A DNA stretch of 63,302 nucleotides, the filler included, from Octopus bimaculoides (Eukaryota), in NCBI RefSeq assembly GCF_001194135.2. It is 9 parts of 8 records of this genome, joined end to end, with 100 filler letters (N's around TTAATTAATTAA, not from the genome) between each part and the next. Parts side by side here need not be neighbours in the genome. Positions count along the whole stretch, not along the records: positions 11,386 to 21,272 come from NC_069003.1; 8 more parts are not named here. The stretch is one strand, 5' to 3'. Below the pieces are notes generated by a model. The model searched no databases and was not told the origin of the DNA. It saw nothing but the letters and a program-made list of their open reading frames with translations. The position numbers and the translations under genes are program-made. Of the stretch, positions 14,016 through 21,399 are shown in pieces. Numbering within the stretch: position 1 is the stretch's first letter; every line of letters starts with the position of its first letter.

Positions 14016-14324
14016 CCGTGGCAGACTGGGTCTAGAAATATTGGTTGCCAGGAGACTAAGGGGGCCCACCCACAGCTACAAGGGGGCCCACCCGCAACTA
14101 CAATGCTATCATTTAATTTTTTTGGTTAAAAGTATTCTTTTCAACTGTCTACAAACACAGCCAGGCTGAAATAATGCATTCTTCCAAGAGTGAATAAGAA
14201 AATTCTGAAACTTGAGTGGATGGGCCTCTAGATACTAACATGGGGCCCTGTATATGGATTCTAATGGCGCAGCAGGGGCCCACTTGTCATCGGGAAAACC
14301 TGCAACCTGGCCAGTCTGCCACTG
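14016..14324. mobile_element. hAT-like MITE
   Basis: 14-bp TIRs C(C/A)GTGGCAGACTGG. 8-bp TSD AACATATT/CACATATT (7 of 8 match). Confidence 0.8.
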
Positions 14325-14773
14325 CACATATTAATGTCAATAATAAGACTTCCTGCGTTTTCTGGCCGGTGCTACTTTGGTGTGTGATCTACAACTTCAA
14401 GGGTGATTACTCTTCGTTAGTTTTAGTTTCTTTATGTTGCAAAACTCGTGGCTGCCAAACTTGTGTGATCTACATGCTTATTTCAAGTATCGCATTGTTT
14501 ATTCTTGGTTTGTTATTATTATTCGCTAAGAGATAAATGGAATATGGTTTCATTATTATTAAAATACTAACAGTTTTGAAAAAAATACATTTACAATGTT
14601 AAGTGTGTACCAAAGAATTTATTGTAAAAACATCTTTAGCCAACAGTTAAGGGTTTTTAGAAATTGGAAAGTAAACTAAAAAGTAACCTAAAGTAATCTC
14701 CCTTTAGGTTATAGATCACACGCCGAAATAGAGACTTACTTTCGGAAGCAATAAAACTGTTGGGAACCTTATT

Positions 14774-14983
14774 CTTTTCTACTCTAGGCACAAGGCCCGA
14801 AATTTGGGGTGCGGGGAGGGGCCAGTCGATTAGATCGACTCCCGTACGGAACTAGTACTTAATTTATCGACTGCGAAAGGCAAAGTCGACCTCGGCGGAA
14901 TTTGAACTCAGAACGTAAAGACAGACGAAATACCGCTAAGCATTTTGCCCGGCGTGCCAACGTTTCCACCAGCTCGCCGCCCT
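14774..14983 (-). mobile_element. tRNA-derived SINE family A, full length, with TSD
   Basis: Head GGCGGCGAGCTGGTGGAAACGTTGGCACGCCGGGC with B-box GAGTTCAAATTCC. TSD ACTGTTGGGA(A)CCTTATT at 14756-14773 and 14984-15000. Confidence 0.9.
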
Positions 14984-15538
14984 ACTGTTGGGACCTTATT
15001 GAGAATATTGTAGTTTTTCTGTGGATTTGGCCTCTTAAAATGTTGGGAATTCAATACTGGTAGTATTGAAGGTGCAGTCTTATGAGATAACATCTTTGAA
15101 AACTATATTCTTTGTTAAACATTTGACATCTGTTCTTCCTTGAGAGAGGTTTTCATAATTTACAATTATTTTAAATAATAATTGAATATCGAAAAGAATC
15201 TAAAACAAAACCCGTCTAATTTTTATTCTGTTACGGTAGGATCTCTTTGGTAAAGCTTTAACAAGTCTTATTTTTGTATTTTAGATTTTAATTTTTATAT
15301 CAGAGAAACGTTCTTGTGGTTCGATTTGAACCCATAGCAGACTAGCTGAACGTGCTTGTGGTTGGATTTGAACCCATAGCAGACTAGCTGTATCACTCAT
15401 CTGTAGGTTCTAGAAACATATAGGAAGTGTAGGAATGTTTGAGGGTTAAAGAGGTTCGTTTCACAATCAGTCGGCCATGTAAATATACACATATACACAC
15501 ACATCTAAACAAGAAAGGGAACCACTTCTAATACTTAC

Positions 15539-15656
15539 CAATTTAGCTTACAGGCAGAGCAAGACGATTTACAGTTTGTAAGCATGTAAACCGGATTTAT
15601 GTCACATTCGCCACTTTTGGCCCAGTGAGCACATTTAGCGTTATTATCAATGCAGG
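15539..15656 (-). CDS. ShKT-domain exon, most 3' copy: (P)CIDNNAKCAHWAKSGECDINPVYMLTNCKSSCSACKLN
   Basis: Acceptor cttctttatttgcag|CC and donor TG|gtaagt; 118 nt, phase 1 to 2. Cys spacing C-x6-C-x8-C-x10-C-x3-C-x2-C with WA..GEC..NP.YM, typical of ShKT. Not in the ORF track. Confidence 0.9.
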
Positions 15657-15745
15657 CTGCAAATAAAGAAGTGAACAGGAATTCTAATTTAGAAATAATA
15701 CATTTCTAAATCTCTCAGAGAGATTTATGCAGTTGTGATACGATG

Positions 15746-15952
15746 AAGTAGTTGTATGCTGTCAACTTAATGTGACAGTCCCCTGAAGGGAATAATACTA
15801 CTGGGTGGAGGTGCTTGTCTCCCCCTTGTAAACAAGGACACAGGAAATGTGTCAAGGCCGACAGGAAGCGGTGCAACTTCCTAGGTCTAACTAACAGTAA
15901 TATTATTCCCTTCAAGGGACTGCCACATTAAGTTGACAGCATACAACTACTT
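15746..15952. mobile_element. Hairpin MITE with approximately 58-bp TIRs
   Basis: AAGTAGTTGTATGCTGTCAACTTAATGTG..ACTG at 15746-15803 is the near-perfect reverse complement of 15895-15952. Confidence 0.8.
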
Positions 15953-16235
15953 TAGGAATTCTGTTTTGTTATAAATGTAAAATAAAGCATTTACTGGAGG
16001 GAGAAGGAGGTAAAGGAAGATAGAGAGAGAGAGAAAGAGTGTGTGTGTGTGTGTGTGTGTAAACAATTAGATGAACCCCATTACATACCTGGTAATATTT
16101 TATCGCCCTTAGAATTTTAAGAGAAGAGTTCAATAAACTACAACAAACAATTTTGCTTCAGTATTATCACCCACCACTGGCACCACCACAATCACAATCA
16201 CCACGCCAATTAAGATGGTAATAATAATAATAATA

Positions 16236-16630
16236 ATCCTGTTTACTGGAAGCACAAGACATCAAATTTGGGGGAAGGGATTAAGTCGATTACATCAAGA
16301 ATAGTGTGTAACTGGTATTTATTTAATCGACTTCGAAAGAATGAAATACTGCTTAGCATTTCGCCCAGCGTGTTACCGATTCTGCCAGCTCACCACCTTA
16401 ATAATAATAATAATAATCCTTTCTACAGTAGGCACAGGGCCTGGAATTTTGGGGAAGGGTATGAGTCAATTACATCGACCCCAATGTGTAACTGGTACTT
16501 ATTTAATCAACCCCGGAAGGATGAAAGGCAAAGTCGACCTCGGTGTAGTTTGAACTCGGAACTTAACGATGAAGGAAATGCCGTCAAGCCTTTTGCCTGG
16601 CGTGCTAATGATTCCGCCAATTCGTCGCCC
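16236..16630 (-). mobile_element. Two tandem family A SINE copies
   Basis: About 16236-16395 and 16420-16630, both similar to 14774-14983. Confidence 0.8.
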
Positions 16631-17044
16631 TACCACCATTCATATCATATTAAAGAGAGAATACCTGTGTGGTTTTGCACCTGTTGGCTTCTCCCCGAGG
16701 GCGTAGTGTGGAGATATTTTACCATAAGAGGACAATGAAATAAAACGGAATTTTGCCGTTCAAGTTTTACACACACACACACACACACACATTTAAGAGA
16801 ATGATGAATAACTTCACACTCGTGGCTTGCGGGTAACTCCGAGTATTGTACTCACCATTCCGAAATCAACACCAATCCTAACGCCCATTTCTTAAATTCC
16901 TTTCGCTATGAAATATTTGGAGGGTGTTTCTATTACATTTTGTTTTTAAAATCCTGTTAGTTTTCAAGAGAAACAACAGTAGGAAACGGGTGGAGCAGGA
17001 AAATTGAATAACAACCGGGTAGAAGAAGCCAAAGATAAACTTAC

Positions 17045-17185
17045 GTTCAACTACTCCTGGATTCAAAGGCTGAGAGTCACACAACTGACAAGAGTTTTTA
17101 CAGTAACTATGCATGTATATAGGATTCTTGTCACATTCCCCGTTATTGGCCCAATGAGAACACTTCTCATTTTGATCAAGACAAT
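17045..17185 (-). CDS. ShKT-domain exon: CLDQNEKCSHWANNGECDKNPIYMHSYCKNSCQLCDSQPLNPGVVE
   Basis: Acceptor ttattgtcgatttcag|AT and donor GAAC|gtaagt; 141 nt, phase 1-1; six Cys in ShKT spacing. Confidence 0.93.
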
Positions 17186-17339
17186 CTGAAATCGACAATA
17201 ATAATAATAACAACAATACCAATATATACCAATGGCCTACCAATGTATACAGTGAGTTTCTTTGTCCTAGGTGTTGGGAAGACACCCAGCAAAAAATTGA
17301 AACAAAATTGAAAGAAGTTAATAATAATAATGATGATAA

Positions 17340-17480
17340 TAATAGGCACAAGGCCTAACATTTGGCAGGAGGGGTAAGTCGATTGCATCAGCCCCAGTGT
17401 TTCACTGGTACTCATTTTATCGACCCCGAAAGGATGAAAAGCAAAGTCGACCTCGGCGTCGATTCTGCCAACTCATCGCC
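17340..17480 (-). mobile_element. Family A SINE, internally deleted
   Basis: Tail and head segments match 14774-14983. Confidence 0.7.
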
Positions 17481-17869
17481 CTATCACAATTCATATCATA
17501 TTCAAGAGAGAATACCTGTGTGGTTTCACACCTGTTGGCTTCTCCCTAAGGACGTAGCGTGAAGATATTTTTCCAGAAGAGGACAATGAAGGAAAATAGG
17601 ATTTTTGCCGTTTAAATTTCATATGCGCGCGCGCGCGCACACACATTTTGGAGAATGATGAGCAACTTCACACTCGTGGCTTGTGGGAAACTCCGAGTAC
17701 TGTACTCACCATTCCCAAATCAACACCAATCCTAACGTCCATTTGTTAAATTCCTTTCGCTATGAAATATTTGGAGGGTGTTTCTATTACATTTTGTTTT
17801 TAAAATCTCCTTACTTTTCAAAAGAAACAACAGTAGAAAACGGGTGGAGCAGGAAAAATGACAACTTAC

Positions 17870-18010
17870 GTTCAAATCCTACTAAATCTGAATTTGTGGA
17901 GCCGCACAACCAACAAGATTTCTTACAGTTACTATGCATATATATAGGGTTCTTGGCACATTCTCCGATAAAGGCCCAATAAGAACACTTCTCATTTTGA
18001 TCAAGACAAT
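17870..18010 (-). CDS. ShKT-domain exon: CLDQNEKCSYWAFIGECAKNPIYMHSNCKKSCWLCGSTNSDLVGFE
   Basis: Acceptor gtcgatttcag|AT and donor GAAC|gtaagt; 141 nt, phase 1-1. Confidence 0.93.
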
Positions 18011-18040
18011 CTGAAATCGACAATAATAATAATGATGATG

Positions 18041-18090
<50 letters not shown>

Positions 18091-18094
<4 letters not shown>

Positions 18095-18330
18095 TGTTGG
18101 TAGTGCACAGAGCCTTCCACCCTAAGAGTGATGCTGCTGTACTTGTTTGGAAGAAAGTTTGTAAGAAGTTTGATCAGTTGCCAGGATTGTATCGAAACAG
18201 ATGAAAACAGCTTATATAAGAATTACCGTGGAACCATTGTTGAAGCATTTGAAGAAGTCCGGCGTCATTAAAACTGATAATTGTGTAAAGAAAAGAAAAC
18301 TTAAAGAGGAAAAGAAAACACACACGTACA

Positions 18331-18366
<36 letters not shown>

Positions 18367-18650
18367 GAAACAGCATGGAAGGGGGAAAAATGTGCGGTCA
18401 GTTTGCAAGAGATACGGAAAATCGGTGGCAATGAATGCGGAGGAGTGATCTGTAGATGAGGACAGAAGCTCTTATATACGCAGCACAAGAACAAGCGTTA
18501 AGGACTAACTATGTGGAGTGCAGTATCGACAACACTACCGACAGCGACAAATGCAGAATGTGTGGTGAGATGGGTGAAACGATATGGCACATCGTTAGCG
18601 AATGTCCGAAATTGGCACAACGCGAATACGAAAAAAACGACATGACAACG
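18091..18650 (+). mobile_element. R4/Dong-like non-LTR retrotransposon fragment (RT thumb to CCHC knuckle)
   Basis: HRAFHPKSD.. followed by TEALIYAAQEQALRTNY..DKCRMCGEMGETIWHIVSECPKLAQREY. Disrupted by stops and a (CA)n tract; preceded by (AAT)n. Confidence 0.8.
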
Positions 18651-18850
18651 GCACAAAAGCCTGAAATTTGTGGGGAAAGGAATAGTCGATTACATCGACA
18701 CCAGTGTTTCACTGGCACTTAGTTTATGGACCCCGGAAAGATGAAAAGCAAATTCGACCTTAGCAGAATTTGAACTCAGAACTTAGCGATGGGCGAAATA
18801 AGTTAAGCTGTTTGCCCGGGATGCTAACGCTTCTGCCAGCTCGCCGCCTT
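18650..18850 (-). mobile_element. Family A SINE
   Basis: Head ..GGCGGCGAGCTGGCAGAAGCGTTAGC and matching tail. Confidence 0.8.
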
Positions 18851-19225
18851 GATGATGATAATGACGACGACGATGACGATGATGATTATGATGATAACAA
18901 TAACAACAACAACAATAATAATGGTTTCAAGTGTTGGTTCAAAGTCAACAAGACCACCCCACCCACAATCATTTTAGAGAATGATGAATTACTTCACACT
19001 CGTGGCATGCGGGTAACTCCGAGTACTGCACTCACCATTCCCAAATCAACACCAAGCCCCACCGGCCATTTGTAAAATTCCCTTCGCTATAAATTATTTG
19101 GAGGGTGTTTTTATTACATTTTGTTTTTAAAATCTCGTTAGCTTTCAAAAGAAATAACAGGAGAAAACGGGTGGAGCAGGAAAAGTGAAGGACAACCGGG
19201 TAGAAGAAGCCAAAGATAAACTTAC

Positions 19226-19366
19226 TTTCAGATACTCCTGGAACGTGAGTGTTAAAAGGACACATGTTACAAGATTTCTTACAGTTTGTATACATGTAGC
19301 TAGGGTTCTTGTCACATTCCCCGATAGTGGCCAAAAATGCGCAATCTTCATTTTGATCAAGACAAT
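19226..19366 (-). CDS. ShKT-domain exon: CLDQNEDCAFLATIGECDKNPSYMYTNCKKSCNMCPFNTHVPGVSE
   Basis: Acceptor gtcgatttcag|AT and donor GAAA|gtaagt; 141 nt, phase 1-1. The conserved Trp is replaced by Leu. Confidence 0.92.
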
Positions 19367-19427
19367 CTGAAATCGACAATGAAAATAATAATAATAGTAA
19401 TAATAATAATAATAATAATAATCATTA

Positions 19428-19665
19428 TTTCTACTCTAGGCACAAATTTTTTGGGAAAGGGGCTGATATCTATTTCATCGACTCGAAAGGGTGAAAGGCA
19501 AAGTCGACCTCGGCGGAATTTGAACTCGGTATGTAGCGGCTGACGAGATACCGCTAAGCATTTCGCATATCGACCTCGGCGTGGTTTGAACTCAGAACTT
19601 AAAATGAACGAAATGCCGCTAAGCTTTTTGCCTGTCGCGCTAACGATTCATCCAGCTTGCCGCCC
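19428..19665 (-). mobile_element. Family A SINE with partial internal duplication
   Basis: TCGACCTCGGCG..TTTGAACTC occurs twice (about 19505 and 19570). Confidence 0.75.
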
Positions 19666-19800
19666 TACAATCATTCATATCATATTAAAGAGAGAATACC
19701 TGTGTGGTTTTACACCTGTTGGCTTCTCTCTGAGGGCGTGGTGGGAAGATATTTTTCCATAAGAGGACACTGAGGGAAAACAGGACTTTTGCCGTTCAAG

Positions 19801-19867
<67 letters not shown>

Positions 19868-20241
19868 NNNNNNNNNNNNNNNNNNNNNNNNNNNNNNNNN
19901 NNNNNNNNNNNNNNNNNNNNNNNNNNNNNNNNNNNNNNNNNNNNNNNNNNNNNNNNNNNNNNNNNNNNNNNNNNNNNNNNNNNNNNNNNNNNNNNNNNNN
20001 NNNNNNNNNNNNNNNNNNNNNNNNNNNNNNNNNNNNNNNNNNNNNNNNNNNNNNNNNNNNNNNNNNNNNNNNNNNNNNNNNNNNNNNNNNNNNNNNNNNN
20101 NNNNNNNNNNNNNNNNNNNNNNNNNNNNNNNNNNNNNNNNNNNNNNNNNNNNNNNNNNNNNNNNNNNNNNNNNNNNNNNNNNNNNNNNNNNNNNNNNNNN
20201 NNNNNNNNNNNNNNNNNNNNNNNNNNNNNNNNNNNNNNNNN

Positions 20242-20296
<55 letters not shown>

Positions 20297-20318
20297 CAAT
20301 AACAACAACAACAACAAC

Positions 20319-20358
<40 letters not shown>

Positions 20359-20359
20359 G

Positions 20360-20590
20360 GTATAATAAAAAAATATTCAGACAAATACATAACAAAAACA
20401 CCAGGACTTACAAATATATATAACATACAGAAAATTGCACTACTGGGCACAGCACACATCCTACGCAAGACACTTGCAATACAGTAACCATAAGAGCACC
20501 ACAGCAAACTACAGCACATAGCCAAGGCACACAGAGCTGCGCTCGGTAGTGAAGTGAAAGTACGTTATGAAAATAAAACTACTGAATAAT
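20360..20590 (+). mobile_element. R4/Dong-like element 3' end
   Basis: ..YNIQKIALLGTAHILRKTLAIQ* followed by a short UTR and a (TAA)n tail. Confidence 0.8.
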
Positions 20591-20629
20591 AATAATAATA
20601 ATGATAATAATAATAATGAATAATATTAA

Positions 20630-21040
20630 TGTGGGGAGTAGAGAGAGGCAAGTCGTATGAGCATAAACTGCAGAGAAGGGTGGAGTCACAGACCTGAAAC
20701 ATCCTCTGCACTTTTCCAAGAGATTATTCACTTCACAGAAGACAGTATCAGAAATATGAATAAAAAGATAAGCAATAGAAAAGAAACAGGGCCTGGTAGT
20801 GTAGGGAGACGTTGGATAAAAGAAAGTTTAGCAGGTGCCATAAATTAATCGCAGATCAATTTAATGCATTGATTGATGGCGAAGAAGAAATGCTGGGCTG
20901 GTTGACAAAGGGACGAGTAGTGTTGTGTCTTAAGGATGAGTCTGAAGGAAATGCTGCCAATAATTACAGGTAAATTTCTTGCCTGTCATTAATGGAGAAG
21001 TTACTGTCAGGAGGAATTGCAGAAGAACTGTCTAGAACCC
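20630..21040 (+). mobile_element. R4/Dong-like RT N-terminal fragment
   Basis: GPGSVGRRWIK..QFNALIDGEEEMLGWLTKGRVVLCLKDESEGNAANNYR*ISCLSLMEKLLSG, a decayed version of the PG.D..W / NYRPITCL..WKLLT motifs. Confidence 0.75.
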
Positions 21041-21114
21041 TAAACATTTTGGTCGCTAAATCGTGTTGGCTGCTGCACCCACGCACCAGTTAAGATACCC
21101 AGAGAGAGAGAGAG

Positions 21115-21159
<45 letters not shown>

Positions 21160-21203
21160 GAAAAATGTAACAAAAAAACAAACAAACAAAACTGTATTCT
21201 TAC

Positions 21204-21255
21204 TGGAATTGGCGGCATCTGATATAACCTGATCGATGGCAGAGTCTGCAGACAC
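21204..21255 (-). CDS. Candidate upstream exon of the ShKT gene (VSADSAIDQVISDAANS if phase 0 to 1)
   Basis: Acceptor atttaatcacttttag|GT and donor TCCA|gtaaga; 52 nt. All three frames are open; phase 0 to 1 fits the ShKT acceptors. No recognisable homology. Confidence 0.35.
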
Positions 21256-21399
21256 CTAAAAGTGATTAAATANNNNNNNNNNNNNNNNNNNNNNNNNNNN
21301 NNNNNNNNNNNNNNNNTTAATTAATTAANNNNNNNNNNNNNNNNNNNNNNNNNNNNNNNNNNNNNNNNNNNNTATATATACATATATATATATATATAT

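Follow-up and report, generated by a model that had tools for sequence, protein, structure and literature searches.

Tandem ShKT exons of an Octopus bimaculoides gene are more diverged, silent sites included, than the intron block duplicated with them

Copies of an ShKT exon arranged in tandem in Octopus bimaculoides are two to three times more diverged from one another than the intron block that adjoins them. Diversifying selection on the exons, which an earlier sequence-only reading had proposed from this contrast, is not supported, as silent changes have accumulated in the exons at about 4 times the intron rate and omega is 0.73, not above 1. The intron looks unusually similar because silent sites are as inflated as amino-acid-changing sites, and the most likely explanation, tentatively preferred here and not proven, is that older exons adjoin a younger, homogenised intron block.

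The locus lies on the minus strand of the window (the whole stretch of DNA analysed, 63,302 nt with filler) and consists of a tandem array of ShKT exon cassettes, about 0.8-1.4 kb apart, whose order on the gene strand is (ATT)n, a 141-nt phase 1-1 ShKT exon, intron block I, (TG)n, block U and a SINE-like repeat. This layout shows an array of exon cassettes within one gene for a secreted multi-ShKT protein, which grew by unequal crossing-over with the gain of one domain and linker per cassette. The features, by position in the window, are as follows.

15535-15656, minus strand: terminal ShKT exon D, an older paralogue without linker, ending ...CKLNW and the stop codon.
16405-16633, no strand assigned: SINE-like interspersed repeat of cassette A (copies in B 17319-17483, C 18659-18848, X 19407-19660).
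16634-16765, minus strand: intron block U of cassette A (copies in B 17484-17620, X 19661-19804; none in cassette C).
16766-16791, no strand assigned: (CA/TG)n microsatellite of cassette A, between I and U (counterparts in B 17621-17645, X 19805-19867).
16792-17044, minus strand: intron block I of cassette A, 253 nt from the 5' splice site, the yardstick of the sequence-only reading.
16795-16865, minus strand: hairpin at the distal end of I, on the sense strand, about 65 nt (copies 17649-17719, 18975-19045).
17045-17185, minus strand: ShKT exon A, 141 nt, phase 1-1, corresponding to A0A0L8HE40 residues 225-270.
17646-17869, minus strand: copy of intron block I in cassette B; 29 nt are deleted at +24 relative to the donor.
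17870-18010, minus strand: ShKT exon B, 141 nt, phase 1-1, corresponding to A0A0L8HE40 residues 178-223.
18972-19225, minus strand: copy of intron block I in cassette C.
19226-19366, minus strand: ShKT exon C, 141 nt, phase 1-1, encoding CLDQNEDCAFLATIGECDKNPSYMYTNCKKSCNMC and the linker PFNTHVPGVSE, outside the UniProt model A0A0L8HE40.
19407-19867, minus strand: distal part of cassette X (SINE-like repeat, U and (AC)n), running into the assembly gap 19868-20241.

The I block and the exon of cassette X would fall within that gap. The TAA stop of exon D falls inside a GTAAGT donor-like sequence, and the block I hairpin carries a 5'-splice-site-like GGUGAGUAC.

Each of exons A, B and C, preceded by ...TTGTCGATTTCAG and followed by GTAAGTT, codes for a single six-Cys ShKT domain and an 11-codon linker. 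The three begin and end in phase 1 (the first 2 nt finish a codon and a single nt remains at the 3' end), and with one whole domain, symmetric 1-1 phase and a length that is a multiple of 3 they have the properties of an exon-shuffling module. Scores against the Pfam ShK profile (PF01549) were 33.6 bits for A, 29.9 for B, 35.4 for C and 34.0 for D, all above the gathering cut-off of 20.9 bits, and the cysteine pattern C-x6-C-x8-C-x10-C-x3-C-x2-C is constant in all four. These scores and the aligned copies bear out the earlier recognition of ShKT exons within duplicated exon-plus-intron cassettes, and its statement that neither cysteines nor exon length nor splice sites vary is correct for exons A-C, whose AG and GTAAGT splice sites are intact in 3/3 copies. 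Residues 178-310 of A0A0L8HE40 (O. bimaculoides, UniProt) correspond exactly to exons B, A and D. Exon C is missing from this gene model though spliceable; the model probably needs revision, because it omits exon C, because a cassette lies in the gap and because a paralogous copy of exon 2 is present. Four stretches of the protein model (P0001) match PF01549, and its N-terminus resembles a signal peptide by inspection. No CAP or astacin domain was found in the protein model by Pfam profile search, and the non-ShKT N-terminal half gave no matches as a protein-search query. An intronless ShKT gene (P0003) considered as a related locus was discarded as belonging to an unrelated metagenome contig.

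Pairwise comparison of the exons gave 29 differences in 141 nt between A and B (20.6%), 38/141 between A and C (27.0%) and 41/141 between B and C (29.1%). For block I the corresponding values were 18/224 (8.0%) plus the 29-nt deletion in B, 26/253 (10.3%) plus 1 nt, and 24/224 (10.7%), so that the exon excess, which is thereby confirmed, was significant in every pair (Fisher's test; p = 6.9e-4 for A-B, 2.9e-5 for A-C and 1.8e-5 for B-C). The hand counts that had first suggested it (29/141 and 38/141 in the exon; about 8% and 11% in the intron) were reproduced. On the other hand, the description of the exon changes as mostly non-synonymous holds by count (about 70-79%) and not per site. Within the Cys core, differences are spread nearly evenly over the three codon positions ([4,4,6] for A-B, [7,6,10] for A-C and [6,7,10] for B-C), which would not be expected from a driver acting on the protein. 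At codons with an unchanged amino acid, silent differences amount to 6/28, 4/25 and 5/24, small counts of 4-6 per pair from three exon copies, set against 8-11% differences per site in block I, or 4.5-5.8% when transitions alone are considered. The tract of low divergence does not track the coding boundary, because the first 20 nt of the exon, together with the 13 nt preceding it, are also identical in all three copies.

Half of the exon excess is concentrated within a linker block of about 25 nt in which roughly 60% of positions mismatch. Indels have probably shifted the sequence there, and without gaps it aligns almost at random. The estimate of about 15 differences per comparison in the 11-codon linker proved accurate (15 for A-B, 14 for A-C and 17 for B-C). 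Only in this linker did omega exceed 1 (2.2; p = 0.23), and it did so by every estimator that ran except LWL85 for B-C (0.63).

Substitution rates were compared in a joint likelihood model combining HKY for the intron and MG94 for the exon, with shared branch lengths. When the neutral rate of the exon was forced to equal the intron rate, omega was 2.7 (p = 1.7e-5); when it was freed, the fit improved significantly (2dlnL 13.4, p = 2.5e-4), with an exon-to-intron neutral rate ratio, r, of 4.3 and an omega of 0.73 for the whole exon. The apparent signal of selection (omega 2.7, p ~1e-5) therefore vanishes, because silent sites are equally inflated. The Cys core alone gave r = 3.9-4.0 and omega 0.5, with r = 1 rejected (p = 0.003), and in a parametric bootstrap of r = 1 the observed value was reached in 1/567. 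Omega did not differ significantly from 1 for the whole exon (p = 0.40), the core or the linker, and pairwise dN/dS, which depended on the estimator, was 0.4-1.2 over the whole exon and 0.2-1.06 within the Cys core, with 0.2-1.24 as the full range of pairwise values outside the linker. The sequence-only reading had held that dN/dS well below 1, with exon dS far above intron divergence, would speak against selection. This is largely what was seen, the exon silent rate being about 4 times that of the intron, with the reservation that omega, while under 1, is not well below it. The alternative offered at that time, introns homogenised by conversion, agrees with an intron less diverged than the silent sites, but strong conversion tracts were not found among the three cassettes.

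The size of the exon excess depends on which co-duplicated non-coding part serves as yardstick, and block I, the one chosen originally, is the most similar of the co-duplicated stretches. Block U is 11-15% diverged and the copies of the SINE-like repeat 19-26% (A-B 21%, or 19% at non-CpG sites, in a repeat that is CpG-rich). The excess is absent when the SINE-like repeat is the yardstick and, for the A-B core (13.3%), when U (13.6% for A-B) is. A SINE-like repeat/U junction is common to cassettes A, B and X, and co-duplication of the SINE-like copies rests only on it because the comparison of shared mutations was uninformative, private mutations common to copies A and B being no more numerous than between unrelated copies. 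For this reason, and because of its CpG content, the repeat is an imperfect yardstick. The label "SINE-like" refers to copy number and size only; ARAGORN detected no tRNA-like head in the repeat.

In the explanation that we favour, the silent sites, the replacement sites and the SINE-like repeat all point to an older divergence of about 0.25-0.35 substitutions per site (A-B), against only 0.085-0.16 for the contiguous I-(TG)n-U block. We infer that this block was homogenised between adjacent cassettes at some time later than the duplications that produced them; the likely mechanism is gene conversion or unequal exchange, with the microsatellites as plausible initiation sites. Selection against conversions that extended into the exons may have spared them, or they may by then have been too diverged for a heteroduplex to extend through them. 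Under this proposal the Cys core is under weak to moderate purifying selection (omega ~0.5), and the linker would be effectively unconstrained and indel-prone, leading to near-random mismatch. Counts of variable sites along I follow a Poisson distribution (per 20 nt, mean 2.8 and variance 2.6); change this even, with a 29-nt deletion tolerated in B, suggests neutral divergence from a more recent common ancestor and speaks against patchy constraint. Weak hints of conversion tracts are a stretch of 62 nt over which A and B are identical, their longest (p = 0.04), and a clustering of lineage labels along the cassette (p = 0.03-0.09). The genealogy counts against homogenisation: branch lengths of.042/.043/.071 in the intron and.143/.196/.333 in the exon (neutral-equivalent units) are proportional (p = 0.88) without discordance, a comparison of low power with three copies, and proportional branches are what a uniform rate difference predicts, not a haphazard history of conversion. 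Lineage-specific changes number C15/A6/B6 in the core, closely matched by C14/A8/B8 in block I.

The same proportionality fits a constant rate ratio, and hence an alternative that we consider possible but rather unlikely, in which the cassettes would be recent, with the neutral divergence of about 8-11% seen in I, and the exons would have changed 2-4 times faster at replacement and silent sites alike, under diversifying selection combined with exon-focused mutation or micro-conversion from diverged ShKT paralogues elsewhere. It draws further support from a dN of 0.21-0.32, which is 2.4-2.8 times the intron distance (omega 2.7 if the intron is neutral), from the linker, where nearly every estimator places omega above 1, from the clustering of lineage-specific changes (nine C-specific ones within about 25 nt) and from precedent in conotoxin (PMC3862624) and viper small-serum-protein (SSP) genes (PMC6609765). 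However, omega is nowhere significantly above 1 and is about 0.5 in the core, the excess at silent sites demands an unknown mutation mechanism targeted to exons, U and the SINE-like repeat likewise exceed I in divergence, the A-B core is not above U, and there is no evidence of the protein as a venom component. RNA-editing "hard-wiring" and cDNA-mediated conversion were rejected as exon-limited mutators, with no excess of sense-strand A<->G changes (A/G 4-7 versus C/T 8-12 per pair). In its stronger form, with young cassettes and ShKT exons diversified, silent sites included, 3-4 times faster than the nearby intron by an exon-focused process (positive selection together with local mutation or micro-conversion, a combination argued for the mature-peptide exons of conotoxins), we regard this account as unlikely; if true, it would be the first case for intragenic domain repeats in a cephalopod, and the choice of cassettes to be spliced in might further depend on the conserved sense-strand intronic hairpin.

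That hairpin is central to another rival, an improbable one, according to which block I with its hairpin is a cis-regulatory RNA element kept with every cassette, and purifying selection slows the intron; candidate roles would be to regulate the splicing of these exons, which are symmetric and potentially skippable, or to act as precursor of an intronic small RNA. In all three copies a hairpin of about 65 nt is predicted, confined to the gene strand (MFE -24 to -29 kcal/mol; z = -4.5, -4.7 and -3.1, antisense ~0), it supplied the two best of 590 windows in an unbiased scan of both strands, and its stem changes preserve pairing by inspection (A-U to G-U, G-U to G-C). It also has the size and stability of a miRNA precursor (about 60-70 nt, transcribed strand), proportional branch lengths fit constant constraint, and exon C is spliceable yet outside the gene model, so that cassette skipping is possible. 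Nevertheless, conservation is even across the 253 nt of I, as the Poisson distribution of its variable sites indicates, and the hairpin, differing at about 8% by eye, is not better kept than the remainder; 29 nt of the block were lost in B, the constraint on I would have to exceed that on the protein core, and U is also low without an obvious function. A structured RNA over the whole of I was rejected, the block folding no better than shuffled sequence (z = +1.05 and +0.34) and the Rfam search of hairpin and block giving no match, only sub-threshold noise. No string match to the hairpin appeared in the supplementary files searched from an octopus miRNA survey (PMC9699675). Coding potential in the intron was also discarded: a read-through ORF spans 64 open codons in C, the 29-nt deletion disrupts it in B and, by inspection, it meets an earlier stop in A. 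An artefact of assembly or sampling is very improbable; it would require near-identical intron repeats to be partly collapsed or chimeric in a gapped, apparently short-read scaffold, or three 141-nt exons to be too few to interpret. In its favour, the N gap at 19868-20241 breaks the array exactly where the next cassette should go on, and silent-site counts are only 4-6 per pair. But chimeric paths reshuffle variants between copies without lowering mean pairwise divergence, an independent gene model agrees exactly with exons B, A and D, and the exon/intron contrasts are statistically robust.

The array carries the caution that an adjacent intron taken as neutral yardstick in tandem repeats can mislead. 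If homogenisation is true, the locus shows in compact form how divergent coding islands can stay distinct within an array that undergoes conversion; if exon acceleration is true, cephalopod ShKT repeats would join cone-snail and snake toxins in showing a "hypervariable exon, conserved intron" pattern.

Homogenised flanks or introns beside divergent coding "islands" or old exon lineages are known from RHD/RHCE exon 7 and from MHC loci, and the gamma-globin conversion tract is bounded by a (TG)n run. Like these, the octopus array consists of tandem copies in which non-coding DNA looks younger than the silent sites of neighbouring exons and, as at the gamma-globin tract, a (TG)n microsatellite is present, here inside the low-divergence block. 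Unlike in these systems, neither significant conversion tracts nor a discordant genealogy was detected among the octopus cassettes.

Viper venom PLA2 genes form an "accelerated evolution" family with conserved introns. In the mature-peptide exon of conotoxin genes, Dn and Ds alike reach 2-8 times the values of the remaining exons, and introns are conserved (PMC3862624), and viper SSP genes combine KA/KS > 1 with a low intron KN (PMC6609765). The octopus locus shares with the Conus conotoxin, viper SSP and PLA2 genes a small secreted disulphide-rich coding module more diverged than the adjacent intron, an invariant framework of cysteines and exons, inflated silent sites, and indels that are common in the variable part. 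It differs from them in that the copies are exons (domain repeats) in one gene, three of which were compared, and not paralogous genes, and in that omega of the Cys core is not above 1.

With regard to the protein, Gerdol et al. (2019) described molluscan multi-ShKT proteins and proposed internal tandem duplication or exon shuffling as their origin (PMC6409789); that work dealt with transcripts, without comparing exon and intron divergence. The octopus protein resembles these in its canonical ShKT repeats behind a putative signal peptide and in the varying number of repeats, and the octopus protein model differs from them in lacking a CAP or astacin domain. The closest solved structures to its ShKT domains, PDB 2MCR ("probable zinc metalloproteinase"; E = 9e-5) and 2K72 (MMP-23; E = 1.4e-3), have the same six-Cys spacing. 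In both, the ShKT domain is appended to an enzyme, whereas in the octopus four or five such domains, predicted from sequence, make up the whole mature protein.

The piece at 11386-21272 is Octopus bimaculoides DNA and carries an already annotated gene, residues 178-310 of UniProt A0A0L8HE40 ("ShKT domain-containing protein") being identical to the products of exons B, A and D of the following list.

19366-19226, minus strand: ShKT exon C, 141 nt, one ShKT domain
18010-17870, minus strand: ShKT exon B, 141 nt, one ShKT domain
17185-17045, minus strand: ShKT exon A, 141 nt, one ShKT domain
15656-15535, minus strand: ShKT exon D, terminal, shorter, one ShKT domain
21204-21255, minus strand: 52-nt exon encoding VSADSAIDQVISDAANS; acceptor AG, donor GTAAGA in phase 1

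The four ShKT exons score 29.9-35.4 bits against Pfam ShK (cut-off 20.9), and the closest solved structures by sequence are two ShKT domains, 2MCR from a putative zinc metalloproteinase and 2K72 from MMP-23. By inspection, the A0A0L8HE40 model has four ShKT domains, a pro-region whose last residues are RFRR and an N-terminus resembling a signal peptide. This model lacks exon C, whose frame is open, whose acceptor (TTGTCGATTTCAG, up to the exon boundary) and donor (GTAAGTT, from the boundary) are intact and which scores 35.4 bits. Exon C may be a cassette skipped by alternative splicing, an exon missed in annotation or one in decay. The Trp conserved in A, B and D (xxWAx) is Leu in exon C (AFLAT). 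As exons A, B and C are in phase 1 at both ends, each can be added or skipped without a frame break. Exon D has no linker (the 11 codons after the last Cys) and ends in CKLNW and a TAA stop inside a donor-like GTAAGT (AAT TGG TAA GT), which looks like a one-time splice donor that is now read through. The 52-nt exon shares 75% identity, not 100%, with residues 24-43 of A0A0L8HE40; it is a paralogous copy of the gene's second exon and points to partial duplication of the gene or to a chimeric model.

Self-comparison showed that symmetric exon cassettes are arrayed in tandem at this locus. Read on the gene strand, the unit is (ATT)n, the exon, a 253-nt intron block that starts at the 5' splice site (I), (TG)n, a next intron block of ~130 nt (U) and a SINE-like interspersed repeat. 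Cassettes A and B have the full unit and C is without U; a further partial cassette, X, and the repeats are located as follows.

19407-19867: distal part of cassette X (SINE-like repeat, U, (AC)31), running into the assembly gap 19868-20241
14770-14985, 16219-16394, 16405-16633, 17319-17483, 18659-18848 and 19407-19660: SINE-like ~220-nt repeat, by sequence comparison
18100-18650, 20380-20490 and ~20640-21050, plus strand: retroelement fragments

At least one more ShKT exon and I block is probably hidden or collapsed in the N gap 19868-20241. Cassettes A, B and X share one junction between U and the SINE-like repeat, so at least this portion of the repeat already belonged to the ancestral unit. 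This ~220-nt repeat has at least seven copies, mutually 70-80% identical and mostly adjoining (AAT)n runs, in which ARAGORN found no tRNA-like head. A retroelement fragment (~550 nt) downstream of cassette C, between exons C and B, is peculiar to that cassette, its ORF having a CxxC...H...C zinc-knuckle and a weak Pfam zf-RVT match (E = 8e-4). Beyond the gap, an ORF ending in KIALLGTAHILRKTLAIQ and a stop, and a stretch containing KDESEGNAANNYR, resemble pieces of LINE ORF2 by eye. Two tandem copies of a 42-nt unit lie at 15307-15390, and the intron between exons A and D holds a 58-nt inverted repeat (15746-15803 / 15895-15952; 95% complementary, 91-nt spacer) that looks like a foldback or MITE-like element.

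A sequence-only reading had counted by hand more differences between the exons than between the copies of I, and had attributed the excess to diversifying selection. Its counts proved exact: for A-B, A-C and B-C, the exons differ at 29, 38 and 41 of 141 nt, and I at 18/224, 26/253 and 24/224 (8.0, 10.3 and 10.7%), besides 29 nt deleted in B and one base more in C. The exons are significantly more diverged in all pairs (Fisher p = 6.9e-4 to 1.8e-5), in a sample of three 141-nt copies on a gapped scaffold, with 4-6 silent differences per pair. The linker hot spot that it had described was also recovered, with 15, 14 and 17 of the exon differences. The Cys core that is left differs at 14, 23 and 23 per 105 nt (13.3, 21.9 and 21.9%), 1.7-2.1 times the divergence of I, the A-B core being not above U.

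In a two-breakpoint scan, the strongest high-divergence segment was a 23-29-nt linker block (A 17087-17051; 0/200 permutations), 58-66% mismatched, close to the 75% that unrelated sequence would give. The alignments suggest that the linker carries compensating in-frame indels: in a gapped A-C alignment, two 9-nt indels bring CCTTTGAA and CCTTTTAA into register. In the first ShKT domain of A0A0L8HE40 the linker is expanded into PNPVV-type repeats. These apparent indels and this expansion indicate that the linker evolves largely by slippage and indels, and counting its differences as point substitutions overstates the excess. Between A and B, the linker (17045-17087, minus strand, and its copies in B and C) looks shifted by 3 nt, yet exon length is exactly 141 nt.

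As a measure of DIVERSIFYING selection, pairwise dN/dS was estimator-dependent and not convincingly above 1: whole-exon values were 0.43-0.81 (NG86), 0.57-1.24 (LWL85) and 0.42-0.58 (ML), those of the core 0.2-1.06, and those of the linker alone above 1. For the comparison that the sequence-only reading had called for, we fitted intron (HKY) and exon (MG94-type codon model) jointly on a three-tip tree with shared branch lengths and kappa, estimating omega (dN/dS) and a multiplier, r, of the exon's underlying (silent) rate relative to the intron. With r fixed at 1, the implicit assumption of the sequence-only reading, omega was 2.7 (p = 1.7e-5). Freeing r gave a much better fit for the whole exon (2dlnL = 13.4, p = 2.5e-4), with r = 4.3 and an omega of 0.73 that did not differ significantly from 1 (p = 0.40). 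The core by itself gave r = 3.9-4.0 and omega 0.5, and r = 1 was rejected (p = 0.003) in a test well calibrated by parametric bootstrap, the observed value being attained in 1/567 simulations. The linker gave r = 4.4 and omega = 2.2, not significant against 1 (p = 0.23).

Among codons with an unchanged amino acid, 16-21% have a silent difference, against 8-11% per site in the intron (4.5-5.8% for transitions only), and core differences are spread near-evenly over the three codon positions. With its silent sites counted, the exon is thus 3-4 times more diverged than I, and no omega is significantly above 1. Since silent sites are also inflated ~3-4 fold, positive selection on the protein alone is insufficient, and the diversifying selection proposed earlier is not supported, the exon's silent sites standing at ~4 times the intron. 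The sequence-only reading had also named what would refute selection, in favour of conversion: exon dS far above intron divergence together with dN/dS well below 1. This is largely what we found, except that omega is below 1 but not well below.

The intron block chosen as yardstick is the most similar stretch available. Non-coding divergence is uneven along the cassette, at 8-11% in I, 11.4-14.6% in U and 19-26% in the SINE-like repeat (21% for A-B, and 19% with CpG sites excluded). Expressed in neutral-equivalent units, exons A and B are ~0.27-0.34 apart, which is near the value for the SINE-like repeat (JC ~0.25), an imperfect clock, and far from that for I (0.085). On the 5' side the low-divergence tract crosses the coding boundary, the three copies being identical from 13 nt before the exon to 20 nt into it. 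Taking the neighbouring intron as neutral is what produces the apparent omega of 2.7, and this is the main lesson of the locus, a methodological one.

We tentatively prefer, at somewhat less than an even chance, the reading that I-(TG)n-U was homogenised among neighbouring cassettes and the exons were not; once the original duplications had occurred, gene conversion or unequal exchange would have evened out this block while the exons escaped. It is favoured by the graded non-coding divergence across the cassette, by changes that are Poisson-uniform along I (per 20 nt, a mean of 2.8 and a variance of 2.6), by the 29-nt deletion that B tolerates in I, and by weak signs of tracts (A and B share an identical run of 62 nt, p = 0.04; labels cluster, p = 0.03). 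The main point against homogenisation is that branch lengths are proportional between exon (.143/.196/.333) and intron (.042/.043/.071; p = 0.88, with little power from three copies) and that lineage-specific changes are alike (core C15/A6/B6, I C14/A8/B8); both are expected from a constant rate ratio and not from independent conversion histories. This proportionality keeps two rivals alive. Real acceleration of the exons, for which a constant rate ratio fits the branch lengths, has precedent in conotoxin mature-peptide exons, where Dn and Ds are both 2-8 times those of other exons and introns are conserved (PMC3862624), and in viper small-serum-protein genes, with KA/KS >1 and low intron KN (PMC6609765). 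A hairpin predicted on the sense strand at the distal end of I, in all three copies, suggests constraint on this block.

16865-16795, minus strand (gene strand): ~65-nt hairpin of A, fold prediction
17719-17649, minus strand: the same, of B
19045-18975, minus strand: the same, of C

The MFE of the hairpin is -24 to -29 kcal/mol (z = -4.5, -4.7 and -3.1; antisense z ~0 to -1.5), and in an unbiased scan of 16380-19400, both strands, in 70-nt windows, copies A and B rank 1st and 2nd of 590 (z = -4.0). The hairpin includes a 5'-splice-site-like GGUGAGUAC, matches no Rfam family and has no string match in the supplements searched of an octopus miRNA survey (PMC9699675). Its conservation is no higher than elsewhere in I, and I taken whole shows no unusual folding; the hairpin therefore does not explain why the whole block is conserved.

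Exons that carry a domain in phase 1-1 are the classical unit of exon shuffling, exons more diverged than their introns are a known pattern in toxin families, and other duplicated loci have divergent exons within conversion-homogenised flanks. Tandem duplication of the ShKT domain is common in molluscs (PMC6409789). The O. bimaculoides ShKT exons share with toxin gene families the greater divergence of exon than of intron, and the locus, in a gene annotated before, is a further example of an already known pattern.
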